A DNA stretch of 64,000 bases, from assembly GCA_002104945.1 (NCBI GenBank), contig MCFH01000005.1, forward strand, positions 310,001 through 374,000, written 5' to 3'. Shown here piece after piece: positions 33,496 to 57,198 of this stretch. Position 1 is the first letter of the stretch; each line of letters begins with the position of its first letter. The notes under the pieces were generated by a model. That model did no database searches, was not told the origin of the DNA, and saw only the letters and a list, made by a program, of their open reading frames with translations. A program made the position numbers and the translations under genes. This DNA is from Piromyces finnis finn. Lineage: Eukaryota; Fungi; Neocallimastigomycota.

Positions 33496-36400
33496 TCATG
33501 GAACAAAATTATGATCTCCATTGGTTGCGCTGGCCCTCCTGGCCTGTCTTACTGTTTCTTCAGTATTGACGCTCTTGGATGTTGCTTCAAACCTTTTGAA
33601 CATTGTCCATTGCTGGCCAATATTAAAAGGCATGATTTTGGTTAGAAGTTCCGCGGTTACCGTCAAGAATGGTGTTCCTTCGTTAGTACCAGATTGAATC
33701 TGACGCTTACAAAGTTCTTTCCATTCCCTTGAATTGTAATTAATATTGTTAAAACTTCTTCCCCCAAGAAGGAATTTAAATATTTTACTGCACACACTAG
33801 AATAATCATACACATTAATATTCACCGGATTATTAGAACTATTACTATCATTAACTAAATTACTATCTAAATTAGAATTATTATCTTCACTATTGTTATC
33901 ATTACTAATATTATTATTTCTATAACTACTATTGTTACTATTACTATTAATGTTATTGCTATCTCTACTGATATTAACATTTTCATTATTATTGATAGGA
34001 CTATTGGAATTACGTTGACTGAAAAAATTTAGTAGCTGGACTATGGAATCATAATGTTTAATACGGATATCTCTAAATGTTGGACAATCTAATAACCAAT
34101 GTTTAATACTTTGAACACCACACTTGCAACATGGACAGTAGTTAGGACAAACTGGATCAACAAATTTGGCAGCTTTGGCAACTCTAGCATCCAACTTGTA
34201 TCCACTTCTTGCTTTCAAGAGCCAGTAGAAGCCATAGGCAAACTCTGGGTACTCATAACATAATTTGATAAAATCTTTAGTTTCAATAAATTTATTATCA
34301 TCATAATATTGCGCTTTGATTGAATTCCCTTTGAGATCTTTCCAATAAAAGTTTTTGATTGCTTTAACATCTCCATGCTTCTTTAGTTTTTTATCAAGTG
34401 TCCTACTTGATTTGCACCACGTGTATTTTCTAAATTTAGGAATGTAATTGACAAGGTGTGAGATAATACAATTTGAGTTTTTCCATTTGTTAAAACATCT
34501 AACCTGAGTTAAAGCACATTTGGCTGACAATGGAGGAATATTCAAATCTTTTGAGATAGAGTATAAAGATATAAACGATACAGCTTTATGAACTCCGGCA
34601 ACCCATCGTATTCCTTTGTTAACATGCTTCTGAGCAATTCTAGACCTGGCTTTGTTGGATCCAAGTAATGGTGCAAAGTATGAAACTCTGCTAATCACTT
34701 GTGAGTTAAGTAATAGCTTTTTGAAGGGAATAGGAATATTAGAATTTCTTAAGAATTTACTGACTGAAAAAAGTCCTTTCAAAACCTTGTTATTAAGAGC
34801 TTTAATTACTGGTTTAAGGGACAGATTCTTATCAAATGGAACACCAAGATAAGTATAACAATCAGTAGTTGGAATGGGTTGTCCTGCTAAGTAAAATGTT
34901 GGATCTCTCTTGATCTGATTTTCTATTGATTCAGAACGAATCACCATCGTTGAACATTTCTGGATACCAAATTCCATTTCATTATACAAGGCCCATTCAT
35001 TAACTCTTCTTAGCATCTTTTTTAAGCATCCTCTTGTTGGAGCACAAATAACTATATCATCTGCAAAAAGTCCACCACAGCATCGAGTGTCACTTAAACT
35101 GACTCTAAGATCTTCGCACTCTTTAAATATATCATTAATAAAGAGATTAAAGAGAATAGGAGAAAGAGGGCATCCTTGACGGACTCCTTTCTTCACATCA
35201 AAAGATTTCGAGAATTGTCCATCTAATTTGACATTAGCCTTAGATGTTAAATATAAATTTTTGATAAATTGTAAACTCTTACCTCGGATTCCTAAACAAT
35301 CTAATTTATGGAGAATATTACCGATTGGGACTGAATCGTATGCTTTCCTGAGATTTAAAAAGGCCAAATATGTCTCTTTATTATCTAATTGACGTCTACG
35401 GCATATTTCTTGGATTGAAATGAAAAGACTGATACTTTCTTCCTTTTTTCGAAAACCAAATTGTTCAGGTCTAATGAAATTATTCTTTAGACCATATTCT
35501 GAGATTCTAGTGGTGACAATTTTGGAAATCAACTTAATACTATTATTGATAAGTGATATACCTCGATAGTTATCACAATCTGTCAAATCTCCCTTCTTAG
35601 GAATAGAAACAATACTGGATTCATTCCATGAGTTGGGGAAGTCTCCATCCCAAATACGGTTGAATAATTTAAGAATAAAATTTAAACCATGAGCATCATT
35701 ATCTGAAGTGGTATTACCGGAAGAATTATTATCTTTAGCATTATTAGAATCATTACTTGATGGAATTAATGCTTTGTAAAATTCAATTGGAATACCATCT
35801 GGACCTGATGCTTTATAATTTGGAGTAGAGAGGATAGCTGACTTGACTTCATCAATACTAATATCTTGGTTGATATCCCACTCATCAAGCATAGGAAGTG
35901 AAAAACGTTTATTCATTGGTTCTTCATACCAATGCTCCAAATCAAGACTTACACTACTTGGATCTGATGCAAGCTTTTCGAAATGATCATGCCACACTTC
36001 TAGTTGTTCTTCTGTAGCAACAACTAATTCTCCATTTTTATTTTTAATTGGTTGAGCAATAAAGAAAGAATCTTTTCCAATTTTTGCAGTTTTCTTGATC
36101 CATTTCCAGGCCTTCTTAGAATTATGACTCTTCATATACTCACATCCTGTTTTAATCCAATGAAGATATTCTTGTTTCCTAAATTCATTACATCTTTTGT
36201 GGATGTAATCAATGAGCTTACGGTAGATTTTAATTCTTTTAATAAATTCATTTATATCATAAATCCTTTCTTTTTTAAATCTCTTATACAACTTCATTTT
36301 GATTTTTTGAAGATTAAAAATTTGTTGTGAAATATGAAATGAAGACTTTATAACATTATTTGCTGAGGTAATACTGAGCTCGTCTGCAATTGAAAAAGCA

Positions 36401-37992
36401 GTTGAAGTAAACTCTTTGGAAAGTTCATCTGTAGAAACATTAGGATCGTTGAATTTTGCTGAAAGTATTTGGAATTTATTATGACTGAGAATAGATTCCT
36501 TTTCCTCAATACATTTTAATCTATTCCATTTCAGAATTTTCTTAGGAACATTAAAGTCATTAGAAAAATCTTCCATAGGAATAATTTTACCATTAATAAG
36601 AAGTGGCTTATGGTCTGATACAGGATAAAAATTATTTATAAATGATCCTGAGTGAATAAGATCTTTCATCTTCGAATTGATAAGAGCATGGTCAATGTCG
36701 GAAGATTGATCACCTCGAGTCCAAGAGATAGTAGACCCTCTAAGCGGAAGAATTTCCCAATCTCCTAATCCATTAGTTGATAACCAGTTGGATAATTTTA
36801 CTTTAGACATATTAAAATCACCAACAAGAATCGATGGATGGGATGAATGAGTTTGTAACCACAAGCGAACTTCTAACTTTGCATGATCAACATAGATGTT
36901 GTGATGACTATGAGGCATATAAACATTTCCAATCGAGCATTTGAATCTATTCCAGAGACTAAAAGTATAAATAGAAATAATATACTTTCCAGAGAAGTTT
37001 TCAAGTGAGGCTTGACACGAATTGTGAAAACCTAAATATAAACCTCTCATTCCCGGAACTGATTCGTCAGCTTTCTTGAAAAAGTGTCTATAGTTTCGCA
37101 AAGTAACACGACAAGGATAATCTGTATTCGATCCAGAACCATTACCAGTTTCTTGGAAACATAAAAATAATGGTTTGAAAATAGCTGTGAAATAGCTAAT
37201 ACTATCTCTCTTTTCGTGATTCCACCCATTGGTGTTCCAACTAAGACAAAAAGAAAAGTTATCAGGCTTGTTGGATGAGGAAGAATCGTTGCTATTATTA
37301 TTATTATTAAAGTCATCGTTATTAATGGATGATGCATCAGAGGAATAAGTAGAACTATTACTAGATGGCTGTGAAACTGAAGAACTATTAACTATTGAAC
37401 TGTTATCAGAGTTGATAGAACTATTAGAATTAATTGTTGAATGTTGAGATTGAAATTGTGTTTGCTGTAGATCTGGAATATTTTCATGATGGGAAACTTG
37501 TTGAAGATCTTGTTGAAGATCTTGTTGAAGATCGGATTGTTGAAGAGATTGTTGAACTGATTGTTGATGAGATTGTTGAATAGAATGTTGATGTTTATTA
37601 GAAACTAAAATTTTACGTTTGAGAGTGGAAAAAGTGTATTTGTGATTCCTTCTACTACGAGCTGAAAAGGAAATTGAGGTAACTGAAAGTTTCTTCTTTA
37701 ACATGTGTAAGATTTTAATACAATCTTTTGATGAACCATGAACCTTGACTAAGAAAAAGTGATCATTGAAAGTTTGAAAATATTTAACACTAATAACTGA
37801 ATTAAATTTATCTTCTAGAATAACCTCGAGTTTTTCCCATAGCATATTTACTGACCATGATCGAATACCACGGATAAAGAAGGAGCGAATATCATCTAAG
37901 GGGATACCATAAGACCGGGTACCACGTAAATATAACGTATATGGAAAAAAATCTGTCTCTCTCTCTCTTCTTAAAAGTACTGGATAGTACAA
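33496..37992 (-). CDS. Retrotransposon polyprotein: N-terminal extension, APE endonuclease, reverse transcriptase, zf-RVT-like finger
   Basis: APE motifs SWNTNG, FQETG, GDFN, SDH. RT motifs GPDGIP, EQFGFR, KAYDSV, GVRQGCPLSPILFNLF, FADD (35056-35067), YLG. C-terminal CPCCKCGVQSIKHWLLDC (C-x2-C-x8-H-x4-C). 37992 is a TTG; the first in-frame ATG is at 37845. Confidence 0.95.
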   Translation of the reverse strand: MYYPVLLRRERETDFFPYTLYLRGTRSYGIPLDDIRSFFIRGIRSWSVNMLWEKLEVILEDKFNSVISVKYFQTFNDHFFLVKVHGSSKDCIKILHMLKKKLSVTSISFSARSRRNHKYTFSTLKRKILVSNKHQHSIQQSHQQSVQQSLQQSDLQQDLQQDLQQVSHHENIPDLQQTQFQSQHSTINSNSSINSDNSSIVNSSSVSQPSSNSSTYSSDASSINNDDFNNNNNSNDSSSSNKPDNFSFCLSWNTNGWNHEKRDSISYFTAIFKPLFLCFQETGNGSGSNTDYPCRVTLRNYRHFFKKADESVPGMRGLYLGFHNSCQASLENFSGKYIISIYTFSLWNRFKCSIGNVYMPHSHHNIYVDHAKLEVRLWLQTHSSHPSILVGDFNMSKVKLSNWLSTNGLGDWEILPLRGSTISWTRGDQSSDIDHALINSKMKDLIHSGSFINNFYPVSDHKPLLINGKIIPMEDFSNDFNVPKKILKWNRLKCIEEKESILSHNKFQILSAKFNDPNVSTDELSKEFTSTAFSIADELSITSANNVIKSSFHISQQIFNLQKIKMKLYKRFKKERIYDINEFIKRIKIYRKLIDYIHKRCNEFRKQEYLHWIKTGCEYMKSHNSKKAWKWIKKTAKIGKDSFFIAQPIKNKNGELVVATEEQLEVWHDHFEKLASDPSSVSLDLEHWYEEPMNKRFSLPMLDEWDINQDISIDEVKSAILSTPNYKASGPDGIPIEFYKALIPSSNDSNNAKDNNSSGNTTSDNDAHGLNFILKLFNRIWDGDFPNSWNESSIVSIPKKGDLTDCDNYRGISLINNSIKLISKIVTTRISEYGLKNNFIRPEQFGFRKKEESISLFISIQEICRRRQLDNKETYLAFLNLRKAYDSVPIGNILHKLDCLGIRGKSLQFIKNLYLTSKANVKLDGQFSKSFDVKKGVRQGCPLSPILFNLFINDIFKECEDLRVSLSDTRCCGGLFADDIVICAPTRGCLKKMLRRVNEWALYNEMEFGIQKCSTMVIRSESIENQIKRDPTFYLAGQPIPTTDCYTYLGVPFDKNLSLKPVIKALNNKVLKGLFSVSKFLRNSNIPIPFKKLLLNSQVISRVSYFAPLLGSNKARSRIAQKHVNKGIRWVAGVHKAVSFISLYSISKDLNIPPLSAKCALTQVRCFNKWKNSNCIISHLVNYIPKFRKYTWCKSSRTLDKKLKKHGDVKAIKNFYWKDLKGNSIKAQYYDDNKFIETKDFIKLCYEYPEFAYGFYWLLKARSGYKLDARVAKAAKFVDPVCPNYCPCCKCGVQSIKHWLLDCPTFRDIRIKHYDSIVQLLNFFSQRNSNSPINNNENVNISRDSNNINSNSNNSSYRNNNISNDNNSEDNNSNLDSNLVNDSNSSNNPVNINVYDYSSVCSKIFKFLLGGRSFNNINYNSREWKELCKRQIQSGTNEGTPFLTVTAELLTKIMPFNIGQQWTMFKRFEATSKSVNTEETVRQARRASATNGDHNFVP

Positions 37993-42756: not shown

Positions 42757-45700
42757 ATGAGTAATCTATTAGATTTGAAAAAAAATAATGAAAATAATAA
42801 TATTTCAAATGAAAATAACAACTTTAAAGACATCCATAAGGATAAAAACGAGAAGCAATTATTAAAAGAAAAAGAAAATTACGACAAAAGAAAAAATATT
42901 AACATGGAAAATATTGATACTGACGTAGAAGAAAATAATATTAATAATAATACTAATGATAACTATAGCTCATCCCAAAGAATTATTAGTAAAAATATTA
43001 CTAATAACAAAAAAAACCATTCTCAAGCTACTCATATATTTTTTATTATTTCTATATCAGAAGATACATTATTAAAAAATAACTCAATAGAAATCCTTGG
43101 CTGTTCTAAAAATGATAAAGAAATTAAAATATTAAAAAAGGAATTAATCGATATTAAAGTTAATAATAACATCAATTTTATTGATATAAAGAACTATGAA
43201 AAAGGTTTTGATGAAAAAAATATTTATATTGTTAAATTTGAGTTAGATTCAAACAATGATGATGAAAAAATATGTTTTAAAATATTAATTAATAATACAG
43301 AATTTAATAAAATGGAATATTCAATTCAAAAGTACGAGCAATTATTTATATATAATGATCTGAATATGAACCATTTATTAAAAAAAGATAAATACAAAAT
43401 TTCACTTCAACAAAAATTTTATATATTTGAAAGATATATATCTAATAATAAAATCAATTTTTTAGTTCCCTCATTATTAAAAGATACATTAAACCCATTA
43501 ATTAATCTTGAAAAAATCGATATTGAATTTATTTTATATTATCTTTTTATTTTAATTGATTATCAAAAAGTTTATTCAGAGATGCCAGAAATTTCAAAAG
43601 AATTATTTTATACTGTCATAATAAATATAAAAAAAAAAAAAGAACTTTTTATTAATTTTCCACTTAAACATGAATATAATGAAATTATTAAAATAATTGA
43701 AAATTACAGCTTTGATTATGATGAAGAATTTTTTTATAGTTTATATCTTTTCTTTTTGTTATGCTATCAAAATAATCATGAAAAATTCATTTCTTATTTT
43801 AAAAAAATATCTCATAAAAAAGAAACTATTCAATATATTAAAAAACATAAAAAATCATTTTCAATGCTTCAGGCATCACATCTACAATCAATCTTTAATA
43901 TTTCCAACAATAATATTTCATTTAATGATCTAATATCAATAATACCAAACTATAATGAATATTTAAAATTTATATGTTTGAATTGTGATTATATTCTTTC
44001 CAACAAACCAGAAATATTTGAATATCCTCCTCCAGATGATAATATAGAAATTGATTTATTAGTAAATTTCATTGAAATAATATTAAATATGAAATTGAAT
44101 AAGAAAAATACTATAATTTTTCAAAGTCAACTTACCAGCTTAATTAATAAATTAAATATGAAAAATTATAATAAATTATTTATTTTAAGAGAAATTATTA
44201 TGAAATATAAAAATAACGATATTTTTAAGAAGCCTTTGAATGAACTGAATAAAGCAATCCATATAACTGGTAAACACTTCATAAAAAATAAAAAACTAGA
44301 AAACTTAGAAATTATTATTTTTATTCACAAAGATGCTGAGGTATTTTATAAAGAATATGAAAATAATTATGAATATGCTTGTTTAATAAGTTATATTGAT
44401 ATTAACAAAATTGATGATAAATTTTGTAATGAATTTATTGGAAATAATTATGATTATAAAAAACTATTTAAAAAACAATATCCTATTTTTCTAAGTTCAA
44501 TAACACAACGTGTAGAATACTTTGAACAATTAAAAACTTTATATAAAATTTTTAATATTGATAATAATCCATCATCTATAAAAGAAATTATAAGTCATTT
44601 AATAGAAACATTGAATTCTAACTCCTTGAAAGTTAAAAATTTAAATATATTCAATTTAAGTGAAATAATTTTCCCATTATATAAATTAGTATCTGATAAC
44701 AACAATTATAAAGTTGATTCTTTAATAAAGGCTACTAAAAGAAAATTTTCTGATAAGGAAATAAATGATATTTTTATTATATTTTTAAATAATTTTATTG
44801 ATCAATTAAATAAAGATATGATTAAAAAATTAATAATAAATACAAATAATTCAAATAGTGATGATATAATCATTAATTTAAATCAAATAGAAAATATAGA
44901 AATAAAAAAGAAATTTTTACAAAGATTGGATAAAAAAGTTTTGAAAGAAAATGAAATTTTTAGAAAAGAAATATCGGATAATATGAAACTACTTCATGAA
45001 TTAATTAATATGAAATATTTTGATTATGAAAATAACAATTATAATATTCATTTTAAAGATATACACTATATTAAATCTACAACAGAAATTATGAAATGCT
45101 TATACGAAAAACTATTTCAATTTGATTTTTCATTAGATGAGATGAAAATTTTGAATCAATTAATTAACGAAGGAAAACTAATGAATAGAATACATTTAGT
45201 TACTTTAGGAAAAGAATCTTTAATGAATATTTTATACAATAAATTAAATAATAAAATAAATGAATATATTGATATATATAATAAAGTTAATGAAATTATT
45301 GATGTATATTCTTATTATTTCAAAAATAATAAAGCTAATTTAATAGAGTACTACAAAGAATTTAGAGAAAGATTTATCCATATGAAAGTAAATGAATTTC
45401 CTCAAATTAAAGAAATTAAGAATTTCAATGAATCATATACAGAGGTACATCAAATTACAATTTATAAATCTTCTAAATTTTTTATTGAAATATTCCAAAA
45501 CTTATCATCAAAAGCAAATAATGATTTTGAAGAAGTTAACGATAATATTTTAATTAATAAAACTAAAGAAGAATTCTTAAAATTAAAAAATTTATTTGAT
45601 GAAAAAACCGAAAATAGAGTAGATTTGTCATTATTAGAAGATATAGTAATAAATATTAATAATAATGATATGGAGAATCAAATTGTTAATCTCTCTTATA

Positions 45701-48700
45701 TATTAGATGTTAAAGAAATACCTAATAATTTATGTAAAAAAATCACCCTATTAAATAATAGAAAGAATAACATAATTACATTAAATAACATTGTTTTACT
45801 CCTCTATGATTTTAAAATTTATATTAATAAAACCGAAAATCATATAAGTAATCTAATATCAATATTACAAAAAAAAGAAACATTAAATGATCTTATTGAT
45901 GTAGAATTGTCTTTACAAAAACTAAATATTAATATTTCAAATTCGGATAAGTATTTTGTTGTAAAAACAGTTATTAATAAAATGTATATTAAACCAGAAT
46001 TAATAAGTTTTTTAATTAATAAAAAAATAAACGATATTCATTCAATGGGTGAATTTATTGATGATTCAGAAAATGAATTTTTATCTTTATCTGATATAGA
46101 TCAATTAGAAACATGTGCTGCCTTTATACATGAATTAAAGAAAAAAAGTACTAGTTTGAATGAAAAAACTTTTTTAGATGCATTTTTAAAACTTGTTGAA
46201 AATGAAAATTATAAAGAAATTGACATTAAGTTTGAAAATTCTTCTAATAAATACCATGATTTTTGTGAACTTTTTACTAGTCACTTAAATCCAAATGAAT
46301 TAAATAAGAAGCACATAAAAGAAATATATCAAAAAAGTCTATTTATTTTAAAACCAAATGAATGCATAATAGAATATGTAAATAATAGAAAGAAAATCAC
46401 TAAATATTTTGAAGAAATACTTGATTTAAGAGATGTAGCATTGTTAAGAAAAAAAGATCAAAAAGAAAGTAACTATTTTAAAATATGTGAAACCTTTGCA
46501 GAAATAATTAGTGATATTCAAGAAATTTTAAAATTAATCAATATTATTACTTTAAAAGGATATTATAAAGAAATAAAATTTACAATTAGAATTGCTGATG
46601 GTAAATCATATGAATGTCAAAATTCAAAAAACGAAATGGAATTAAAAAATATTATTAATTATTTAAATGAAATTAAAAAGGTTCAAAATGAAGAAGTAAA
46701 AAATATATATTTATTAAATGACATTGTTCGGTTAATTTATGGAAGACAGTTTAGTTACATATATCAATACTTAATAACTAATAATAACAAAGAATTAAAT
46801 AAACCAATGAATAATAATATTTTGAATAATATCTTAAAATATGCTACAAATAATAAAAATACTAACTATAATGATAATTATAATAATAATAATATGAAGA
46901 ATATTAACAAAGAAAATACACAAATACTTTTAAAAGAAATGTATACTACTGTAGGTACATATCTAAACGAATTATATAAAATAAATAATATAGACTTAAA
47001 AAGCATATATAATAAATCAATTATTGTAAATGGTTCAAAAAAGGGAATATTTAGTTATTCAAGTCAATTAGAAAATATTGAAAGAAATGCAATTTACTGT
47101 TCATTAAATTTAACTGGAAACTTTCCAATTGCTCAAACAGTTTTATTATGTAATTGTAATACTACAGAAGAAGAGATAACTTCGTTTACATACAGAAGTA
47201 TTAAATGTAAATATAACACATTATTTCTTATTATTAAACCAGAAAATTTAAGTCTTGAGAAGAAGCATTTACTCATTGAACTATTAAAAGAAATTTATTC
47301 ACCAAACCCAAAATGTATTAATTCGTGTATAATCTTTATATATAATAATAAAAATAAAACTAATGAAATTATAACAGAAATTGAAAAATTACCATATCAT
47401 AAATATTTTGACTTAAAAATAGAAAATAATAATGAAAGAAAATATCCAAATATAGAAATTTATTCTAGTGAATTCTCTGGATTAGGAAAGTCAACATTGA
47501 TTAAAAGTAATTTTAAAAAAGAGGATAATAATAATGAATATGATTATCATTATTTTCCATTGGGTGGAGATATTAATGAAAATGAGATTTTTGAAAAAGT
47601 ATTACCATTTACAGATAAAAAAATTGCATTACATTTAGATTTATATGATACTGAACAAATTGAATTAATTAATGAATTTTTATTTTCATTTTTAATTTTA
47701 AGATGTTATTCAAAAAATGAAACTGTATTTTATTATGGAAATAATATAAGAATTAAAGTTGAAATACCAAATAGCTTTATTGATTTTAAAAAAATATTTC
47801 CAATATTTGGATTTTTTAAAAATATTCATTTAGCGTCTGATAAGATGTTACCATTAAATGTTCCTAATAATATATATTCCAATGTCCAAATTGTTTCAAA
47901 TTATTTAAAATATATTAATCAAATTAATACCAGTGATATATTTATAGAAGAAATAAGTAAAATCGATCGTATAAATAGTATTAATGCAGTCCCACTAAGT
48001 CAAACAGAATGTCAACGCCTTATATTTGAAAATTTAAATATTAATAAACCAAATTATTATCAAATTGAGTCTTTTATGAAAATTTTATCTGAACAGTTTA
48101 TTCTCTTATCTAATTCTATATATTTAAATGCAAATCACATAAATAGTCTTTCACAAATAAAAAAAAATCTAAATAATGTAAGATATTTTTTTGTAAATTC
48201 ATTATTATCAATGACAAAGCACTTTATAACATCTTCATATGATAATATTTTAAAAAGTCAAAATATAACCTATTCCCATCAAAAAGGAGAAATTGATATT
48301 ATTGAAGCTAATGAACGAGCAATTGAAATTTTAACGGAAAAAGAACCATTTTCAATTGATAATATTAAACCAAGTATGATTATAATTAATGAAGACTTTC
48401 AATCTATATCTGAAATTGTAACATGTGAAGAAGATACAGATGAATATAGATTATTAAAAGCAATATATAATTCAGATTCACATGAAGAAAAAAGGAATGT
48501 TTTGGACTATAAAAATTTGAAGTCAGAAGAGTTTTTAGTTGAAGTTAAAAAAGTTCTAAATATTAACAATCCAATTAATGAACTTGATAAAAATTCTCCA
48601 AAAATATTGGGTGGAAAACAATTAAGATATTTGAATGATATTACAAAATCTTATGTATTTACTGCTGATAACTTTATTAAATTAATTATAATTTCATTAA

Positions 48701-51700
48701 GATTAAGAACAAATATTCCAGTTATATTAATGGGTGAAACAGGATGTGGCAAAACTTCATTAATTAGAATTATTGCAGAATTAAAAGATATTGAACTAAA
48801 TTCACTAAATATCCACGCAGGCATCGAGGATAAAGATATTATTCAGTTTATTCGAAATAAAAATTTATTTGAAAATAGAAATTTAAATACAAATGAAAAA
48901 ATAAATAAAAGAAGTAATAATAATATTTGGGTATTTTTAGATGAAATTAACACATGTAATTCATTAAGATTAATAACAGAAATCATGTTAAAACATTCTT
49001 GTAATGGAAATAAAATAAAAGATAATGTGAAATTTATAGCTGCATGTAATCCATACAGATTAAACACAAAAAATAATGAAGTAATTGGGTTATATGATGA
49101 ATCAAAGCACTCTGTTAGAAAATTGGTATATAGTGTTAATCCAATTCCTATCCCACTTCTCAATTTTGTTTTTGATTTTGGAACACCTAAAAAAGATGAC
49201 ATTAAAAGATATATTTCAAATATGGTTTTCCAGATTCTTCAAAGCTTAATTCCAAATAATAATATATTAATTGAAATTCAACGTATTGCTGAAAATGCTA
49301 TATTTGAAGCTCATAAATTTATTCAAAAAAATTATGAAATATCTTCAGTAAGTCTAAGAGAAATAAGAAGATGGGGAATTTTATATGAATGGTTTGTTCA
49401 GTTATTAAAAAATAATTTATACGTTAAAAATAAGTTAGAATATAATGATGAAAGTGTATATCTTTATTCCTTAAATTTAAGTATTTATCTTTGTTACTTT
49501 ATAAGAATTTTTAATAAAAAACAAAGAGAAAAATTTGTTCAATTAATGAAAAAAGCATTCGAAGAAAAAATTAATTTCGAAAGTTTTCCAAGGAAATTTC
49601 AAGAAATAATTGCAACAGCAGTTGAATTAGAAATAGGTATTGCTAAAAACAGAGCATTATTAGAAAATTTGTTTTCGATTTTTGTATGTTTGAACACTAA
49701 AATTCCTTTATTTATCATTGGAAAGCCAGGATGTAGTAAGTCATTAAGTGCCCAATTAATTTTTAAATCAATGAATGGTAAAAATTCAAGAAATGAGTTC
49801 TTTAAATCTTTTCCCAAAGTTTATACAAAATCATACCAAGGATCACTAACTAGTAATTCTAAAGGTGTCTTAAAAATATTTAAAAAAGCAAGAGATTCCC
49901 TAAAGGATAAAGAGTTAGCAAAAGAAATTATATCTGTAATTTATTTTGATGAAATGGGTCTTGCTGAGATTTCTAAAAATAACCCTTTAAAAGTAATTCA
50001 TTCTCAATTAGAATATGATGAAAATCAAGAAAAGGTATCATTCATCGGAATTTCTAATTGGCCTTTGGACGCGTCTAAAATGAATAGAGGTATTCATCTT
50101 TCAATTCCAGAACCAGATAAAAATGATTTAATTGAAACAGCACTATGTATAGCTAAATCCTATGATATAAGATTAATTCATGAATACAATCAGTATTTTG
50201 AATATTTAGCTCTAACCTATTTTGATTATAAAAAAGAATTAAATAAAAATTCATTTAAATTTGAATCAATTACTAACTTAGATTTTAATTCTAACCAAGC
50301 AAATAAGAAAGAATTTCATGGTACAAGAGATTTTTATCATTTAATTAAAACAGCATCCAAATTATTAGTCAAAAGCAATTTTACTAAAGATACTAATTAT
50401 ATTGAAAGCATTTTAAATGAAAGTATTGAAAGAAACTTCGGTGGATTGGATTTTTCAATTAGAATTTTCAAAAAATTATTTAAAAACTATGTTCCATTTA
50501 TTAATGAGATTAATGAATATGATGTCATTCAATGTATTAAAGATAATATTCAAGATACAAAAAGTAGGTATTTATTAATAGAAACAAAAAGTTCTATAAG
50601 CCATTTTCTAATAACATTAATATTAGATAAAATGAAAAAAGATCATGTATTTTATTATGGTAGTAACTTTGAAGAAGATACTTTAAATGGATATTATAGT
50701 GCTAAGGTATTAAACAAAGTTCAGGTAACGATGAGTCGTGATAATGTAATGATATTAAAGAATTTAACTAGTATGTATCCATCTTTATATGATTTATTTA
50801 ATCAGAATTTTAGAAAAGTAGGTGAAAGCAACTATGCTAGAATTGCTTTAGGAAATTCAAATACTCAAAATTACTTTGTTAATAATAACTTTAGATGTAT
50901 TGTTTTATTGGATAAAAGTGAAATTGATAATCAGGATCCTCCATTTATTAATAGATTTGAAAAACATATTATGTCATTTAAATTTTTATTGAATAAATAT
51001 CAAATTGAAATTGCGAAACAAGTTTTTGAATTAATTAATAAATTAGTTAAATATAAAAATATAAATATAAAAATTGACTTATATCATGAATTAATTAATT
51101 GTGATTTAGAAGAAATCCAAGGAATAATATATCAATATTCTATAAAATATAAAAAAGAAAAAAATATAGGTAATGCAAAAAATGGTATATCTAATATTGA
51201 AGAGAAAATTAATGAAAATAACTATATAAATAAATATGATTTTGAAACATACTCTGAAAATATTTTACAAAATATTGTTCCAACATTTTCACAGGACATC
51301 ATATTTTATGCCAAAAATTCAATTTTTGCTAAAAATCATAACAAAGAATTTCAAAATATTTTATATATATATCTTAAAAATAATTGTAGAAACATTAAAA
51401 CATATTTAAAAAATATTGATTCCCCTAAACATATTATTTATACATTCTCAAACATTTTGGATTCCATCTTTGAAACAAGCGAAAGTAAAATATTTAATAA
51501 AATATATGGTGTATTTAATATTAAATCAACTAGAAATATTTTTATAAAGGAATATAACTCTGAACGTGCTATTGACGATTTAATAATTGATTTTTATTCC
51601 AATAATAACAATAATTTATGTATATTTCATTTTGATTCTAAAGATATTATTCATTTAAATCACATTAATAATTTAATTATAAATAATAAATATAACATTA

Positions 51701-54700
51701 AAGATTCGAAAAATATTAATATGAAAGTAATTATTTTTATTATTCATTTAAAAAGAACTCAAAATAACAATAAAAATGAAAATATTAGAAATGAGTATTT
51801 CATATCTCATTTAACTGAATGGAAACAACTTTTTATTGATAATTTAAATGGTATGGATATAGATTTCAATGAAATATTTGAATCTTCTACAATTGAGTTA
51901 ATTAATAATAATAAGTTAATAAATTTGGATGACGAATTTGAAAAAGACTTATTCCATGCATTTACCTTGATAAAATATAATTTCAAAATCAATTTCAGCA
52001 ATATTAAAAATACCCAATATATAGAAAAAGTTTGTGAATTCATTAATAAAAATCAAAATCTAAAGATTTCTATTCAAAATGTTATCCTAAAAAAAATAAA
52101 AAGTATTAAAGAAAATATAATTATGAAAATATTTTCTGAATATAACTTTGATGATGATGATGTTGATTTTATTTCTATAATTATAAAATACTTAAAAACA
52201 ATTTACAGTGAAGCACTAATTAGCACTTTAATTCAATTCGAAAATCATAACATTTTATCAACGAAAATGACTGAAAAACGGGTGATGAAAAACGAATTCT
52301 TTAACAAAATTTATGAGAACTTCATTGAAAACTTTGATATTAAATTTGAAAAATATTCTGTTTTTTCTCATGTAGTTAATGTTAATTTAATTTTGGGTGT
52401 TTCATATCCATGTATTATTTCTGTATTTAAAATTATAAATAATTATACAAATTCTTTAATAAGCAAATATTTAGAAAATGAAAATAAGTACAGATTCCAA
52501 CAAATTAATGAACTAAATGAGTATTTCACTGAAAAAACTAATCTTGAATGTAACTTGAAAATTGAATTTGAAAGGCAATACATAGAAAAAATCTTCGATA
52601 ATAATGCCAATGAAGATCTTGATATTGATAAATTAACAGAACTTTTATTTAAAGATTATAATATTTATTATTTATCCAAGTCAAACAAATGTTTTTCTAA
52701 CAAAAGAATTTTAAAATTTTTTAAATCTTTATACAATTTACTTTTATCAAGAGATGGTAATGAAGAGAATAATACTAAAAATTTGACATTTGAAAACATA
52801 GTAAAATATATCTTATTTATTGAATCCTATAAAGAATATATTTATCCACTTTGTGAATTTTTATGTACGATGGATTACTATATTAAAGACTTTATTAATA
52901 TATTTATTTCAAAAATTCTATCAAATAATTTTAAAATGCTAAATAGAAACATTTCTTATGTTAATGATATTTTTTATAATTTGTTTGAATCAGTTGTTTA
53001 TTGTATTCTTTCAACAAAAAATCTCAAATACATGAGCAATAATTATTTTGATATAATATTAAATAATATTAATATTTTTTCCCATAGTTTAATGAAAGTA
53101 AATATTGAACTACGTTTAACATTAAAACAAATTTTATATTTACAAGATTTTCTAAATGTTTATGAAGAATTTTGTAAAAATGGTATTCCATTAAAAGAAA
53201 ATTTGAATATATATCTTAAATTATTACAGAAAGAAAATGAAGCTTATTTATTAACTATAAATAATAATGCTAAAAGTATTATAAGTTCAACAAAAGAAGA
53301 AATTGATAAAGAATTTGATTTTTTAAAACAAAAACTATCAAAAAGTAAAGGATATTCTGATTTAATTGTAAGATTATTAAATAATAAAATAAAAATGTCA
53401 AAAGATGAAGAATATAGAGTAAAATTATTAAATATTCTCTGCTCTAATAATTCTTTTATCTTTAAATCAAAAATTATTTTTGAAACTATCTTAAGAAAAT
53501 ATGATATAATACCTATAAATTATTACCAAGAAAATGAAGATAGCTCATCCGAGGATGAAAGAAACAATATCCATAAAAATAATTATTATTCGGAAAATGA
53601 ATTTACATATGAAGAATCTGATTATGAAGAAAGTTGTAGTGAAAACTCTGAAGAAAGTGATGAATATATAAATAACGATGAAACTATTTATAATGAAGAG
53701 AATAGTTATAAAGATACTGACGAAAGTGATAATTATTCAATTGATGATGATGAAAGTGATGAATATAGTGACTATGAAGATAGTGAAGATGAAAATTATA
53801 ATGCAATTGGTCTTAGATTTTTATCTCAATTAAAAAAAGATAAAGGAAATGTAATTATTTTATTCTTAAATAAAACCAATAATGAATGCTTAGATGAGAT
53901 TTTATTGTTGTTATTTGATGGAAAAATTTCAAAATATTTTGATAAAAAGTCTGACACAAAAAACATGATATTAAACCAATCATTCTATATATTTCAAAAA
54001 TGTATTAATTTCATAGAAGAAGATAATTTTAAAGTTACAAAAACAAATAAGTTAGGAATTTTATATTGTATTTCATATATAAAATATTATTGTTTTCATG
54101 TTTGTAGAATAATGTATAATGAGAATGAAAATAATGAAATTTCAAAAACAGAAATTTTTGACTTTTTAAATAAGCCAAGTGAATTTAGAAAAATAATTAA
54201 AATATATATTCTTAAAGTATTGAATTTAATAGTAATTAAAAATTATAGCCGCTTTATTAATTTTATTAAAATAAAAAAATTATTTATTAATGACTTTGAT
54301 TTTAATGAGAAGATTCCATGTACTCTAAATTATTTATTCATTCACAACAAAACATTTGATAAATATAAAGAGTTAAGAAATGCTTTCACACTTAATAAAT
54401 TTGAAAAGTTCAAATCAAATAATAGTATACTTAAGGTAACTGAAGAAAATATGTTAGATTTCTATAATCTATTAATTAATGAAATAGTCTCAAATTTATT
54501 GGTGTCATATAATAAAGAGGATTATGCAATATTAAGCAATTATATAAATGAAATAATTAGTAAATTAAAGATATCACCAATTTCGTCAAGGATTTTATCA
54601 TTATATTTTGATATAAATTTCTTATCCAATCATTTACCTTCAATTCAAAAACTCACACCAGAACATTTTGAAGTATTATTATATTCACATAAATGGGCTT

Positions 54701-57198
54701 TTATATGCTCTCTTTCAAAGAAGAACTCTGTTTACTCTAAAATTTTATCACCGACAGTAAAGATGGACATAAATAATATATACATTCCAGGAGGAGAACC
54801 AAATAATTGTTTATTGATTGAATCTTATGATCAAATTGAAAAATTTATTAATTCTGGAAGATCTGGTGCAATTTATATGTGTAGCTGTTACTCATGGTAT
54901 ACAATTGGAGAATGTGGAAGACCAATGGAAAAAAAAATATGTAGAAAATGTGGAAATGAAATCGGGGGTATAGATCATCGTTTAATTGATAGACAAGGTC
55001 ATGTGAGAATTTTTATTAATGATAATGAAAGAATACAAAATAATGATGGTACCAGATTTAAAATGCTACGCGATTTAAAAATAGAAGCCAATAATAAAAG
55101 AAATATTCAAGTGAAAGGATTTAAAAAAGTGGATAAATCATTTTTTTTGGACAAAAACAAAATTGTAAGAAATATTAGTAATATAACTTATAGAGTTTTA
55201 AGTTTTATATTTTATTCTTGTATACTTTATAATGAAAAATTAGAACATTTAACAAAAAATGATATGAAGCAATTTTATTTATCTGATAATAATCAATCTA
55301 TTCTTTCTATCTTAACTGATATATGGAAAATATTAATAGAGGAATTATCAAATAAAGGAATTGATAATATTCAGTGCTTCATAAATATGATAATTCCTGA
55401 TATTTCTCAAATTATATCTGAAAATAATAGCGGAATGGAAATTTCAAAAGATAGAGATAACTTTGAACAAAAATGTAATCAAATTATTGATTTAGCAATT
55501 AATAATTATAGATATTATCAAAAAGACTACATGACAAATAATAAAACAATTCTTGAAATTGAAGATGATACTATTAAATCTATATTACAAGAAACATCTA
55601 ACATAAATAATTTACCATCAGAAACTTATCCATTAATTAAATATTTTAATGCAGCGGATTATCCAAATTATGAAAAATTTTTTGAACAATTTAATTCAAT
55701 TAACAATTGCGTTAGTCAATACCCAGTTATTACTAATTATATTAATGCAACACAAGAAGAAGAAAAATTCCAATTTTTGGAAAATTTCCATCTTATTAAT
55801 CCATTTGTAAACTATTTATTAAGTAAGTATAATAATAAAATATCAAGAAAAAAAGCAAAAGAAAAAAAATTATATGAAGCCTTTGAAGATAATGAAAATA
55901 ATAACGAAATGAAAAAATTATATAAACATTTCAAAAAAGGGTGGAGAAATATATATAATAAATTATCAAATTATGATTGTAATGGTCAATTACCCCCAAA
56001 AAATCTTTCAAAAAAGGATTGTTTAGCCTTCTTTTTAAATGATAAATTTGAAAATAATTATGGGAAATATATTGCTACTGCTTATAAAGATTTTATTACT
56101 TATCAAAATGAATTTTTAAAACCTTTAATTAAAGACAACTCTAATAATGAATATTTATATGCATATTCAAATCAAATTAAAAAAGAAGTTGTTATACAGA
56201 GAGCAAACAAGAAAGAAGTTGTTTCTTTACATATTGAAAATGATCTTTTTGATTCATTTGAAGATATAATTTATTCTTTCTCCTATCGTAATTATAACTT
56301 TAATGATAAAAGCATAAACTATTTAAATTATAAAGAAATTAAATTTGATTTTAATTCAATAGAAATGGAGCTTACAAAAATTTTATTACCTGAAAAAAGA
56401 TTATTCTTAAATGAAGATAATCAAGATTTTATTACATATGCTTTTGAAGGATTTAATCAAAATGAAAGTATTATTTTAGACTACAAAGAAAAAATTCAAA
56501 AAGTCAAAACACTAACTAATGAAGAAAAAGTAAACATTGCTAAACATATTAAAAAAATAGATTATAATGTGATTCTATTTAATTTACAATCCTTATTACT
56601 TTATATGACAAATGCTAAGAATATAACAGGAAATGAAAAATTAGTGGATGAAATTAAAAAATTACCAAATAAGGTTATAAAACTAGATTATGAATTTATA
56701 AAGTTTTTTGAGGATTTTCAATTTGAAATAACACTAAATCAATTGATAGATTGTTACGAATACATCGAACTTTTAAATTATAGTAAAATATTAAAAAACG
56801 TATCACAAAAAGTCAAAATTATTAGTTTAGATAAAGAACAAAAGGAAAAATTACAAATACATTTTGGAAAAAAAGATCTTTTAATTTCCAAAAAAGACCT
56901 TGGACACGCAGTTAGAAAATTTATATCAAGATATTTAGTTAGCGATAGATTTAAAAATTTCGACTGGAATATATTTGTTCTACTAAAGTTCAAAAGTGAA
57001 CTATGGAGTGAACACATTGTTTCTGAAGAAAATGAAAGAATATTTGATAATGAAATTGAACAATTAGAAAGTTTTGATATTAGAATAGAGCAATCTGTAG
57101 ATTTTTATGAAAATCTAAGAGATGATAAAGTTGAAAAAGTAATTAAGACCCAAAAATTCAAAAAAGAAAAGAGTAAATTTGCTGATTTGAACTATTAA
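42757..57198 (+). CDS. RNF213: RNF213/mysterin-like giant AAA+ ATPase / RZ-finger E3 ligase (4813 aa, intronless)
   Basis: P-loops SSEFSGLGKST (47464), GETGCGKT (48733) with Walker B FLDEIN (48934) and FIAACNPYR, and GKPGCSKS (49720) with FDEMGLAE (49945) and ISNWPLDASKMNRG. RZ finger YMCSCYSWYTIGECGRPMEKKICRKCGNEIGGIDH at 54874-54978. Motif order is as in RNF213. Confidence 0.9.
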   Translation: MSNLLDLKKNNENNNISNENNNFKDIHKDKNEKQLLKEKENYDKRKNINMENIDTDVEENNINNNTNDNYSSSQRIISKNITNNKKNHSQATHIFFIISISEDTLLKNNSIEILGCSKNDKEIKILKKELIDIKVNNNINFIDIKNYEKGFDEKNIYIVKFELDSNNDDEKICFKILINNTEFNKMEYSIQKYEQLFIYNDLNMNHLLKKDKYKISLQQKFYIFERYISNNKINFLVPSLLKDTLNPLINLEKIDIEFILYYLFILIDYQKVYSEMPEISKELFYTVIINIKKKKELFINFPLKHEYNEIIKIIENYSFDYDEEFFYSLYLFFLLCYQNNHEKFISYFKKISHKKETIQYIKKHKKSFSMLQASHLQSIFNISNNNISFNDLISIIPNYNEYLKFICLNCDYILSNKPEIFEYPPPDDNIEIDLLVNFIEIILNMKLNKKNTIIFQSQLTSLINKLNMKNYNKLFILREIIMKYKNNDIFKKPLNELNKAIHITGKHFIKNKKLENLEIIIFIHKDAEVFYKEYENNYEYACLISYIDINKIDDKFCNEFIGNNYDYKKLFKKQYPIFLSSITQRVEYFEQLKTLYKIFNIDNNPSSIKEIISHLIETLNSNSLKVKNLNIFNLSEIIFPLYKLVSDNNNYKVDSLIKATKRKFSDKEINDIFIIFLNNFIDQLNKDMIKKLIINTNNSNSDDIIINLNQIENIEIKKKFLQRLDKKVLKENEIFRKEISDNMKLLHELINMKYFDYENNNYNIHFKDIHYIKSTTEIMKCLYEKLFQFDFSLDEMKILNQLINEGKLMNRIHLVTLGKESLMNILYNKLNNKINEYIDIYNKVNEIIDVYSYYFKNNKANLIEYYKEFRERFIHMKVNEFPQIKEIKNFNESYTEVHQITIYKSSKFFIEIFQNLSSKANNDFEEVNDNILINKTKEEFLKLKNLFDEKTENRVDLSLLEDIVININNNDMENQIVNLSYILDVKEIPNNLCKKITLLNNRKNNIITLNNIVLLLYDFKIYINKTENHISNLISILQKKETLNDLIDVELSLQKLNINISNSDKYFVVKTVINKMYIKPELISFLINKKINDIHSMGEFIDDSENEFLSLSDIDQLETCAAFIHELKKKSTSLNEKTFLDAFLKLVENENYKEIDIKFENSSNKYHDFCELFTSHLNPNELNKKHIKEIYQKSLFILKPNECIIEYVNNRKKITKYFEEILDLRDVALLRKKDQKESNYFKICETFAEIISDIQEILKLINIITLKGYYKEIKFTIRIADGKSYECQNSKNEMELKNIINYLNEIKKVQNEEVKNIYLLNDIVRLIYGRQFSYIYQYLITNNNKELNKPMNNNILNNILKYATNNKNTNYNDNYNNNNMKNINKENTQILLKEMYTTVGTYLNELYKINNIDLKSIYNKSIIVNGSKKGIFSYSSQLENIERNAIYCSLNLTGNFPIAQTVLLCNCNTTEEEITSFTYRSIKCKYNTLFLIIKPENLSLEKKHLLIELLKEIYSPNPKCINSCIIFIYNNKNKTNEIITEIEKLPYHKYFDLKIENNNERKYPNIEIYSSEFSGLGKSTLIKSNFKKEDNNNEYDYHYFPLGGDINENEIFEKVLPFTDKKIALHLDLYDTEQIELINEFLFSFLILRCYSKNETVFYYGNNIRIKVEIPNSFIDFKKIFPIFGFFKNIHLASDKMLPLNVPNNIYSNVQIVSNYLKYINQINTSDIFIEEISKIDRINSINAVPLSQTECQRLIFENLNINKPNYYQIESFMKILSEQFILLSNSIYLNANHINSLSQIKKNLNNVRYFFVNSLLSMTKHFITSSYDNILKSQNITYSHQKGEIDIIEANERAIEILTEKEPFSIDNIKPSMIIINEDFQSISEIVTCEEDTDEYRLLKAIYNSDSHEEKRNVLDYKNLKSEEFLVEVKKVLNINNPINELDKNSPKILGGKQLRYLNDITKSYVFTADNFIKLIIISLRLRTNIPVILMGETGCGKTSLIRIIAELKDIELNSLNIHAGIEDKDIIQFIRNKNLFENRNLNTNEKINKRSNNNIWVFLDEINTCNSLRLITEIMLKHSCNGNKIKDNVKFIAACNPYRLNTKNNEVIGLYDESKHSVRKLVYSVNPIPIPLLNFVFDFGTPKKDDIKRYISNMVFQILQSLIPNNNILIEIQRIAENAIFEAHKFIQKNYEISSVSLREIRRWGILYEWFVQLLKNNLYVKNKLEYNDESVYLYSLNLSIYLCYFIRIFNKKQREKFVQLMKKAFEEKINFESFPRKFQEIIATAVELEIGIAKNRALLENLFSIFVCLNTKIPLFIIGKPGCSKSLSAQLIFKSMNGKNSRNEFFKSFPKVYTKSYQGSLTSNSKGVLKIFKKARDSLKDKELAKEIISVIYFDEMGLAEISKNNPLKVIHSQLEYDENQEKVSFIGISNWPLDASKMNRGIHLSIPEPDKNDLIETALCIAKSYDIRLIHEYNQYFEYLALTYFDYKKELNKNSFKFESITNLDFNSNQANKKEFHGTRDFYHLIKTASKLLVKSNFTKDTNYIESILNESIERNFGGLDFSIRIFKKLFKNYVPFINEINEYDVIQCIKDNIQDTKSRYLLIETKSSISHFLITLILDKMKKDHVFYYGSNFEEDTLNGYYSAKVLNKVQVTMSRDNVMILKNLTSMYPSLYDLFNQNFRKVGESNYARIALGNSNTQNYFVNNNFRCIVLLDKSEIDNQDPPFINRFEKHIMSFKFLLNKYQIEIAKQVFELINKLVKYKNINIKIDLYHELINCDLEEIQGIIYQYSIKYKKEKNIGNAKNGISNIEEKINENNYINKYDFETYSENILQNIVPTFSQDIIFYAKNSIFAKNHNKEFQNILYIYLKNNCRNIKTYLKNIDSPKHIIYTFSNILDSIFETSESKIFNKIYGVFNIKSTRNIFIKEYNSERAIDDLIIDFYSNNNNNLCIFHFDSKDIIHLNHINNLIINNKYNIKDSKNINMKVIIFIIHLKRTQNNNKNENIRNEYFISHLTEWKQLFIDNLNGMDIDFNEIFESSTIELINNNKLINLDDEFEKDLFHAFTLIKYNFKINFSNIKNTQYIEKVCEFINKNQNLKISIQNVILKKIKSIKENIIMKIFSEYNFDDDDVDFISIIIKYLKTIYSEALISTLIQFENHNILSTKMTEKRVMKNEFFNKIYENFIENFDIKFEKYSVFSHVVNVNLILGVSYPCIISVFKIINNYTNSLISKYLENENKYRFQQINELNEYFTEKTNLECNLKIEFERQYIEKIFDNNANEDLDIDKLTELLFKDYNIYYLSKSNKCFSNKRILKFFKSLYNLLLSRDGNEENNTKNLTFENIVKYILFIESYKEYIYPLCEFLCTMDYYIKDFINIFISKILSNNFKMLNRNISYVNDIFYNLFESVVYCILSTKNLKYMSNNYFDIILNNINIFSHSLMKVNIELRLTLKQILYLQDFLNVYEEFCKNGIPLKENLNIYLKLLQKENEAYLLTINNNAKSIISSTKEEIDKEFDFLKQKLSKSKGYSDLIVRLLNNKIKMSKDEEYRVKLLNILCSNNSFIFKSKIIFETILRKYDIIPINYYQENEDSSSEDERNNIHKNNYYSENEFTYEESDYEESCSENSEESDEYINNDETIYNEENSYKDTDESDNYSIDDDESDEYSDYEDSEDENYNAIGLRFLSQLKKDKGNVIILFLNKTNNECLDEILLLLFDGKISKYFDKKSDTKNMILNQSFYIFQKCINFIEEDNFKVTKTNKLGILYCISYIKYYCFHVCRIMYNENENNEISKTEIFDFLNKPSEFRKIIKIYILKVLNLIVIKNYSRFINFIKIKKLFINDFDFNEKIPCTLNYLFIHNKTFDKYKELRNAFTLNKFEKFKSNNSILKVTEENMLDFYNLLINEIVSNLLVSYNKEDYAILSNYINEIISKLKISPISSRILSLYFDINFLSNHLPSIQKLTPEHFEVLLYSHKWAFICSLSKKNSVYSKILSPTVKMDINNIYIPGGEPNNCLLIESYDQIEKFINSGRSGAIYMCSCYSWYTIGECGRPMEKKICRKCGNEIGGIDHRLIDRQGHVRIFINDNERIQNNDGTRFKMLRDLKIEANNKRNIQVKGFKKVDKSFFLDKNKIVRNISNITYRVLSFIFYSCILYNEKLEHLTKNDMKQFYLSDNNQSILSILTDIWKILIEELSNKGIDNIQCFINMIIPDISQIISENNSGMEISKDRDNFEQKCNQIIDLAINNYRYYQKDYMTNNKTILEIEDDTIKSILQETSNINNLPSETYPLIKYFNAADYPNYEKFFEQFNSINNCVSQYPVITNYINATQEEEKFQFLENFHLINPFVNYLLSKYNNKISRKKAKEKKLYEAFEDNENNNEMKKLYKHFKKGWRNIYNKLSNYDCNGQLPPKNLSKKDCLAFFLNDKFENNYGKYIATAYKDFITYQNEFLKPLIKDNSNNEYLYAYSNQIKKEVVIQRANKKEVVSLHIENDLFDSFEDIIYSFSYRNYNFNDKSINYLNYKEIKFDFNSIEMELTKILLPEKRLFLNEDNQDFITYAFEGFNQNESIILDYKEKIQKVKTLTNEEKVNIAKHIKKIDYNVILFNLQSLLLYMTNAKNITGNEKLVDEIKKLPNKVIKLDYEFIKFFEDFQFEITLNQLIDCYEYIELLNYSKILKNVSQKVKIISLDKEQKEKLQIHFGKKDLLISKKDLGHAVRKFISRYLVSDRFKNFDWNIFVLLKFKSELWSEHIVSEENERIFDNEIEQLESFDIRIEQSVDFYENLRDDKVEKVIKTQKFKKEKSKFADLNY

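Follow-up and report, generated by a model that had tools for sequence, protein, structure and literature searches.

Does a gut fungus possess an RNF213-type ubiquitin ligase machine and, if so, from which lineage was it acquired and for what purpose? The question is raised by a giant open reading frame (ORF) in a 64,000-nucleotide stretch of the Piromyces finnis genome (contig MCFH01000005.1, positions 310,001 to 374,000 of the forward strand), termed here the window, in which all nucleotide positions are numbered. The original prediction, made from the sequence alone, viewed the ORF as a complete RNF213 (mysterin)-like AAA+ machine of an anaerobic fungus, with a C-terminal RZ finger and a possible part in an animal-like defence or symbiont-control pathway. 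The analyses described below indicate, with a probability of about 0.6, that the gene is of ciliate origin and that its product is a giant AAA+ ubiquitin ligase of the RNF213 family from which the RING is missing.

The ORF occupies exactly the interval first reported, 42757..57198 on the forward strand, and encodes 4813 amino acids (aa) followed by a stop codon, without interruption. The G+C content of the DNA is 16-23% (about 20%), a composition at which about one in ten random codons is a stop; that 4813 codons nevertheless remain open (a chance of ∼1e-200 by our own estimate) shows that the ORF is a real gene. Its product corresponds to P. finnis BCR36DRAFT_318513, a ‘hypothetical protein’ (UniRef ‘RZ-type domain-containing protein’) with a public model of 4747 aa, which is carried on a 1,372,137-bp scaffold. 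The 100% match in the core confirms that the host is an anaerobic fungus. Full-length alignment revealed no mismatches outside three gaps, and the public model differs from the ORF solely by the removal of three in-frame pieces totalling 66 aa. Of these, the first two coincide with positions conserved in homologues and are, therefore, probably mis-called introns, while the open 4813-aa reading is probably the true gene product. The gene apparently lacks introns.

Pfam identified AAA, AAA_5 and AAA_7 domains at aa 1962-2100 and a second P-loop near aa 2314-2340. In a phmmer search of PDB sequences nine RNF213 sequences were the sole matches (best E-value 2.8e-98), and aa 1960-2767 proved collinear with residues 2387-3202 of human RNF213, both human and mouse chains being matched. 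A profile of aa 2700-3500 carries the match on to human residue ∼3423 (E 1e-8). In mouse RNF213 the AAA core spans residues 1775-3405, the hinge 3406-3588, the E3 module 3589-4926 and the RING 3940-3999 (PMC7311170), and the similarity thus reaches the end of AAA6. AAA3 contains the Walker A motif GETGCGKT (aa 1993-2000, K1999) and the Walker B residues D2062/E2063, while in AAA4 these elements are GKPGCSKS (aa 2322-2329, K2328) and D2398/E2399; all are aligned opposite the equivalent human motifs, and the lysines and the acidic pairs are invariant in an alignment of 23 fungal and ciliate homologues. AAA2 displays the P-loop SGLGKS (aa 1574-1579; G1575, G1577 and K1578) and an HLDLYD strand with D1628, after which there is no catalytic Glu; these four residues, too, are invariant. 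As judged from its motifs, this is the pattern of RNF213 AAA2, described as binding ATP without hydrolysing it (PMC7311170).

Sequence profiles of aa 1150-2000 and aa 3400-4100 recovered nothing from the PDB beyond the parts already recognised, and structure prediction was thus needed in these regions. The AlphaFold2 (AF2) model of aa 1250-2000, based on a 46-sequence alignment, has a predicted local distance difference test score (pLDDT) of 86.9 and a predicted template modelling score (pTM) of 0.83. The best eight Foldseek matches of this model in the PDB were all RNF213 (E 3.7e-18 to 3.7e-14, TM-scores (TMq) of 0.56-0.61), with dynein motors next. Together with the sequence matches over AAA3 to AAA6 the model shows a dynein-like ring of six AAA units, as assembled from separate pieces. 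The E3-module model (aa 3185-4384; 42 sequences, pLDDT 80.1, pTM 0.62) matched seven RNF213 entries and no other PDB structure at E≤1e-3 (9.3e-8 to 2.5e-4), the next match being at 0.085. The authors of the RNF213 structure found no counterpart of its E3 module, a helical scaffold with shell, back and core parts, elsewhere in the PDB (PMC7311170), which makes this match specific. VIA-align, which skipped chains of more than 3000 residues and hence all RNF213 entries, returned only generic helical-repeat matches at Z<7. The homology to RNF213 that was first proposed from the sequence alone is, therefore, upheld by both the sequence matches and the RNF213-type folds predicted for AAA1-2 and the E3 module. 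A predicted structure devoid of the six-AAA ring and the E3 module, which had been named beforehand as an outcome that would disprove the proposal, was not obtained.

The E3 module has no RING. Pfam gave no RING or U-box match on this piece even at E≤1, a C3HC4 regular expression found none in the protein or in ∼250 relatives, and in the 23-sequence alignment neither Cys nor His is conserved anywhere between residues 3218 and 4042. By residue offsets, rather than structural alignment, the mouse RING corresponds to ∼aa 3535-3600, and an acidic disordered loop sits roughly at this site. By contrast, the RZ finger is present, although not at the C-terminus as had been described; as in RNF213, it stands ∼730 aa before the end. 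In the phmmer search aa 4041-4078 formed a second segment, matched to the RZ finger of human RNF213, and AF2 predicts a fold of one helix and five strands. In human RNF213 the RZ zinc ligands are C4505, H4509, C4525 and C4528, the nucleophile is C4516 and the general base is H4537 (PMC11549300). C4042 is equivalent to C4505, C4062/C4065 to C4525/C4528, C4053 to the nucleophile and H4074 to the general base. Across the 23 homologues C4053, C4062 and C4065 are invariant and H4074 is retained in at least 90%. An extra cysteine, Cys4044, is also invariant and generates a CxC motif. Among the RZ fingers found in the collected relatives 179 of 180 are of the CxC form and one is of the human CxxGH form, while the nucleophilic Cys is retained in 179 of the 180 matches, indicating that the CxC finger is the norm in the fungal and ciliate part of the family.

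The N-terminal 1250 aa gave no Pfam match even at E≤1, nor did a 23-sequence profile of this region match any PDB sequence. It is the most variable part of the protein, with 32-57% identity between paralogues compared with 60-86% in the AAA core. At the opposite end, ∼aa 4520-4813 displays a weak, collinear profile match to the C-terminal part of mouse RNF213 (domain independent E-value 0.79). The epithet ‘complete’ does not fit a protein that has no RING, whose RZ finger departs from that of RNF213 at one of four zinc ligands and whose N-arm bears no sequence relationship to its counterpart.

Vertebrate RNF213 (human Q63HN8; 6TAX, 8S24 and 7OIK) has the same domain order as the Piromyces protein, the span from AAA3 to RZ being 2042 aa in the fungus and 2078 aa in human, and the distance from RZ to the C-terminus ∼730 and ∼700 aa, respectively. 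The six-AAA dynein-like ring, the AAA3/AAA4 motifs, the AAA2 pattern, the E3 scaffold fold and the RZ Cys/His residues are common to both, with a core identity of ∼35% to human RNF213. The vertebrate protein, however, has a RING where the acidic disordered loop roughly lies in its fungal relative; its RZ zinc site is Cx3H...CxxC, not CxC...CxxC, and the N-terminal part of the Piromyces protein is ∼430 aa shorter and unrelated in sequence to the long helical N-arm, which in human RNF213 includes a CBM20, a domain not detected in the fungal protein. The only other protein with a described RZ finger, ZNFX1, shares the Cys/His catalytic pair (bioRxiv 10.1101/2025.10.14.682297), but is a superfamily 1 (SF1) helicase that bears NFX1-type zinc fingers together with a Miz domain and lacks an AAA ring. 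Pfam found none of these three elements in the Piromyces protein, only AAA-type P-loop families and RZ. Dynein heavy chain and midasin (Rea1), the second tier of structural matches (E 2.5e-5), also contain six AAA units in one polypeptide; unlike them, the Piromyces protein has no linker/stalk motor apparatus or MIDAS domain, and the likeness is far weaker than that to RNF213.

The RNF213-like family comprises 4583 clusters at 50% identity when matches with E≤1e-3 are counted and 1094 at E≤1e-30; the relatives discussed here are the best 120-150 matches of each search. Other anaerobic fungi contribute proteins from Piromyces sp. E2 (four), Neocallimastix lanati, Neocallimastix sp. ‘constans’ and Anaeromyces robustus; invertebrate members are from the bivalves Sinanodonta, Mya (‘R213A-like’) and Mercenaria, from amphioxus and from the nemertean Lineus, and Tetrahymena malaccensis provides a ciliate example. 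Identity to the P. finnis protein is 57-100% in fungi and ∼38% in animals, and between the two, among the matches listed, lie more than 90 rumen-metagenome proteins at 45-51%. Rumen ciliates account for more than 100 clusters among the best 120 matches. No relatives came to light when IMG/VR viral contigs and the genomes of bacteria and archaea were scanned with only two peptide patterns, an approach of limited sensitivity. The invertebrate expansions (Mya arenaria ‘R213A-like’, amphioxus and nemertean) are likewise multi-copy, with AAA cores 37-38% identical to the fungal protein and matches of 200-250 bits in the linker-AAA1-2 region. Their E3 module, however, is not alignable with the fungal/ciliate profile at ≥80% coverage, no RZ match to the fungal/ciliate RZ profile was found in the named invertebrate members, and the tree places these proteins opposite the fungal and ciliate group. 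The T. malaccensis protein (P0331, KAL4475077.1; 7271 aa, partial) contains two AAA3/AAA4 cores, 90% identical to each other, with Walker A positions 2192/2513 and 6187/6518, so that either the gene model has joined a tandem pair or the protein truly has a double ring.

The rumen-metagenome relatives at 45-51% identity are rumen-ciliate proteins. One contig, L004 (15,221 bp; ERZ28616782, STEW19-1_SAMEA5384017 scaffold_1903), is capped by (CCCCAAT)n and, at the opposite end, by (ATTGGGG)n, and its only gene encodes an RNF213-like protein of 4951 aa (P0093). All rumen ciliates examined have (CCCCAAT)n telomeres, and their macronuclei contain gene-sized nanochromosomes; the mean chromosome sizes in these organisms are 2.3 kb for nanochromosomes and 14.3 kb for minichromosomes (bioRxiv 10.1101/2022.01.05.474053). 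L004 is a complete rumen-ciliate nanochromosome. Further members are encoded by multi-gene contigs, L001 (P0042) and L003 (P0148, from the P0031 cluster), on which the neighbouring genes encode protein phosphatase 2A (PP2A) and proteasome β4. The closest relatives of these neighbours, 79% and 68% identical, respectively, reside on telomere-capped 1-kb nanochromosomes, and the same searches returned zero anaerobic-fungus proteins among the best 120 matches. No telomere repeats were present on L001, L002, L003 or L027. An argument for ciliate origin from the near-equality of contig and gene size was dropped, as Neocallimastix genes are alike in this respect, and was replaced by the telomere and neighbour-gene evidence. 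The rumen-ciliate proteins (P0093, P0042 and P0031) align with the Piromyces protein over the full length (29-33% identity overall, 45-59% in the core) and share with it the RING-less architecture, the CxC RZ finger, a size of ∼4600-5000 aa and the habitat. Their genes, unlike the fungal copies, reside on nanochromosomes of one gene each or on short chromosomes with several genes, and their family is much larger.

Several side observations concern these contigs. At 15.2 kb L004 is far above the mean nanochromosome size. The 2.2-kb rumen-ciliate contig L018:1-2187 has a telomere repeat at one end and contains two genes for 307-aa PP2A catalytic subunits in divergent orientation; either it is a nanochromosome with two genes or two nanochromosomes were joined in the assembly. 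Beside the RNF213-like gene of L003, at 24880-26814 on the reverse strand, is encoded a 644-aa BspA-like protein in which LRR_5 and DUF285 repeats alternate; surface-repeat proteins of this kind usually occur in bacteria and some gut protists. P0531, deposited at NCBI as ‘MAG: proteasome subunit beta [archaeon]’, shares 69% identity with the eukaryotic, ciliate-type proteasome β4 of L003; its place among rumen-ciliate nanochromosome genes suggests that a eukaryotic contig was probably mis-binned into an archaeal genome.

Mean identity between the fungal and rumen-ciliate proteins is 49.7%, on a par with that within the rumen ciliates (51.7%) and far above that between rumen ciliates and Tetrahymena (30.8%), while fungi share 36.8% with animals and 29.6% with Tetrahymena. 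In a tree of the AAA3-AAA5 core (815 columns, LG+C20 with posterior mean site frequencies) the fungi form one clade with a support of 100, which is sister to P0031/33/34 (96) and nested among rumen-ciliate sequences, with animals and Tetrahymena outside the group. The same topology was recovered after Dayhoff-6 recoding (fungi 100/100; fungi plus the P0031 group 95.9/99), from the non-overlapping linker-AAA1-AAA2 region and from the concatenation (1502 columns), in which both key nodes had a support of 100. The approximately unbiased (AU) test rejected rumen-ciliate monophyly with p 0.033 for the core and p 0.0006 for 27 rows of ∼1500 columns. These data do not bear out the suggestion that the system is ‘animal-like’ by descent, as the fungal copies are ∼50% identical to rumen-ciliate proteins, compared with 37% for animals, and are nested within the rumen-ciliate radiation. 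Piromyces sequences pair with those of Neocallimastix or Anaeromyces in several separate sub-lineages of the fungal clade, implying that the family duplicated before the three genera split; on these sequences the fungal copies comprise at least four old paralogue lineages. The most economical reading, to which we give somewhat better than even odds, is that a single transfer brought the gene from a trichostome (gut) ciliate to the ancestor of the sequenced anaerobic gut fungi.

Such a transfer must be weighed against vertical descent from an opisthokont or older eukaryotic RNF213-like ancestor, with hidden paralogy, differential loss or a shared AT-driven amino-acid bias producing the likeness to rumen ciliates. 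The age and breadth of the family, whose 4583 clusters extend over animals, ciliates and fungi, favour this explanation, as does the marginal outcome of the first AU test. Composition points the same way, since the fraction of FYMINK residues (Phe, Tyr, Met, Ile, Asn and Lys) is 0.44 in the fungi, with a similar value in rumen ciliates, and 0.29 in animals. In Tetrahymena, however, the fraction is 0.42, yet its proteins are distant; composition alone, therefore, does not explain the grouping of fungi with rumen ciliates. As the nesting also withstands recoding, an independent region and concatenation, the second AU test is clear-cut and the identities follow the pattern described above, vertical descent is improbable. 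An inactive relic, or ciliate contamination of the assembly, might be suspected from the rumen-ciliate affinity of the nearest non-fungal relatives and from the apparent lack of introns. The 1.37-Mb scaffold, however, compares with mean chromosome sizes of 2.3 and 14.3 kb in rumen ciliates, ordinary eukaryotic genes and an element of the long interspersed nuclear element (LINE) type flank the gene, and orthologues and paralogues occur in the genomes of several independent cultured fungi. Contamination, a concern raised at the outset, is excluded by the scaffold size, the fungal gene context and the finding of family members in several cultured species, and with 4813 open codons and every catalytic motif intact an artefact of either kind is exceedingly improbable.

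The proposed ciliate-to-fungus transfer is mechanically plausible because the two groups share the gut, the ciliate gene is carried on single-gene telomere-capped DNA, and zoospores of anaerobic gut fungi have been reported to take up nucleic acids (bioRxiv 10.1101/487215). Single-gene telomere-capped nanochromosomes could serve as ready-made DNA packets. A survey of horizontal gene transfer in anaerobic fungi identified 34 events with eukaryotic donors, among which ciliates are not mentioned (bioRxiv 10.1101/487215). If, as we assume, the 2017 UniProt reference sets of that survey held few or no rumen-ciliate proteins, it could hardly have detected a transfer from ciliates.

With respect to mechanism, ubiquitin transfer by RNF213 is ATP-regulated and proceeds via an E2 such as UBE2L3. 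Nucleotide binding in AAA3/AAA4 would, by homology with RNF213, gate the E3 module. A cysteine-reactive ubiquitin-conjugating enzyme charged with ubiquitin (E2~ubiquitin) would then transfer ubiquitin to RZ Cys4053 by transthiolation, and His4074 would assist its discharge onto the substrate, possibly via a hydroxyl group, and the choice of target would fall to the variable N-terminal 1250 aa. A RING would not be required for this route. Indeed, the RING of RNF213 is dispensable for both auto-ubiquitylation and the ubiquitylation of bacteria (PMC7311170, PMC11549300), and since RNF213 activity is RING-independent a RING-less relative can be active; by analogy, we infer ligase activity for the Piromyces protein. 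Ester-linked ubiquitylation of non-protein substrates via RZ has been discussed for RNF213 and ZNFX1 (bioRxiv 10.1101/2025.10.14.682297), and the RZ domain described here may permit the same chemistry. That such modification of non-protein substrates has an antibacterial or symbiont-control function in the fungus is pure conjecture, and it is speculative that the protein acts cell-autonomously to survey intracellular microbes, viruses or the surfaces of organelles and lipids.

The fungal protein could instead have a housekeeping role, its ATP-gated E3 activity being directed at lipid droplets, hydrogenosomes, membranes or stalled protein assemblies, and its copies would then reflect sub-functionalisation and no arms race. 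Lipid droplets are also a site of action of mammalian RNF213, whose substrates include non-immune ones. In keeping with such a role, no defence genes are evident beside the gene within the 64-kb window, and anaerobic fungi are walled and non-phagocytic. Against it stand, as circumstantial evidence, the large lineage-specific expansions in rumen ciliates and in symbiotic bivalves, in which RNF213 is expanded (PMC9993606), and the fact that divergence is fastest in the presumed target-binding N-terminal part. Expansion and fast divergence are both typical of host-microbe conflict genes and, together with the habitat, fit a conflict or symbiont-control role, although this evidence too is circumstantial. 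We consider a housekeeping role on organelles or lipid stores a serious alternative, albeit at less than even odds. The fuller proposal is that the whole ∼15-kb gene moved from a gut ciliate to the gut-fungus ancestor, was duplicated there and now constitutes a RING-less, RZ-only defence or symbiont-control system; the odds for and against this sequence of events are evenly balanced.

Several points weigh against a RING-less RNF213-type ligase of ciliate origin, or against its proposed role. The TM-scores (TMq) of the E3-module model to RNF213 are low, at 0.31-0.34, and imply kinship at the level of the fold only, with no detailed congruence of the module. Within the RZ finger the human zinc ligand H4509 is replaced by Ser4046, the three other ligands being retained, and it is a guess that Cys4044 takes over the role of the histidine. 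The groups compared in the AU tests were defined after the first tree had been seen, the branches P0030, P0036, P0043 and P0117 carry no taxon label, and the ciliate identity of the sister group, P0031-34, rests on one neighbouring gene of L003. A compositional artefact stemming from the extreme AT-richness of both lineages is a further concern, which Dayhoff-6 recoding and the distance of the equally AT-rich Tetrahymena make less likely. Finally, in a fungus that is walled and does not phagocytose, the need for an anti-bacterial coat in the cytosol is less obvious.

The bare existence of the Piromyces protein is not new, as it has been annotated automatically. What is new is the structural confirmation of AAA1-2 and the E3 module, the recognition that the RZ finger is normally of the CxC form in this family, the very large set of family members in rumen ciliates, encoded on nanochromosomes, and the phylogenetic argument that the fungal genes derive from ciliates. 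A literature search found no paper on RNF213-like proteins in fungi or ciliate protists, in agreement with the initial statement that no functional description in fungi was known, and RNF213 has been described as ‘expressed in all vertebrates’ (PMC7311170). The family is far larger and more widespread than this vertebrate-centred literature suggests, being massive in rumen ciliates and expanded in gut fungi. Rumen ciliates ingest bacteria and house endosymbionts. These features invite the question of whether eukaryotes that live amid dense bacteria generally rely on surveillance of the RNF213 type. A relative that has no RING and an altered zinc ligand, while its ATPase motifs and Cys/His pair are intact, supports the view that RZ is the ancestral and sufficient catalytic centre, and offers a simpler protein for mechanistic work. 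If the ciliate-to-fungus transfer is real, it represents an unusually large gene transfer between eukaryotes; were a defence role also to hold, an innate-immunity machine would have passed from one eukaryote to another inside a single ecosystem.

The coordinates of the regions of the gene are collected in Table 1.

Table 1. Regions of the RNF213-like gene of P. finnis, in window coordinates, and pieces missing from its public model.
Feature	Window position	Strand	Residues (aa)	Basis or remark
N-terminal region	42757..46503	+	1-1249	Position of RNF213 N-arm and part of linker
Linker end, AAA1 and AAA2	46504..48633	+	1250-1959	Predicted structure and Foldseek
AAA3 to AAA6	48634..51696	+	1960-2980	phmmer and profile match to RNF213
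E3 module, mostly helical scaffold	52309..55908	+	3185-4384	Holds the acidic loop and the RZ finger
Acidic D/E/S/N/Y-rich loop, disordered	53530..53805	+	3592-3683	pLDDT ∼30 (model residues 408-499)
RZ finger	54862..55002	+	4036-4082	Pfam PF20173 at aa 4036-4077, E 1.6e-11
C-terminal domain-like region	56314..57195	+	∼4520-4813	Limits inferred from offsets to mouse domains (PMC7311170)
Removed piece 1	43738-43824		328-356	Conserved positions in family consensus (fungal and ciliate homologues)
Removed piece 2	52027-52062		3091-3102	Conserved positions in family consensus (fungal and ciliate homologues)
Removed piece 3	53635-53715		3627-3653	Absent from public model BCR36DRAFT_318513

Elsewhere in the window a second giant ORF (156-17420, forward strand) encodes 5754 aa and consists mostly of nested tandem repeats with periods of 42, 297, 339 and 381 nt. 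The repeats are up to 98-100% identical, and the Pfam families detected in the product are exclusively of the coiled-coil type (SlyX, TolA_bind_tri and DUF948); a further array, of 120-nt repeats, lies at 14458-16524. On the reverse strand, at 33496-37992, is the 1498-aa ORF of a retrotransposon without long terminal repeats (non-LTR), which contains an Exo_endo_phos endonuclease and an RVT_1 reverse transcriptase and has a G+C content of 31-33%, compared with 16-22% in the surrounding DNA.

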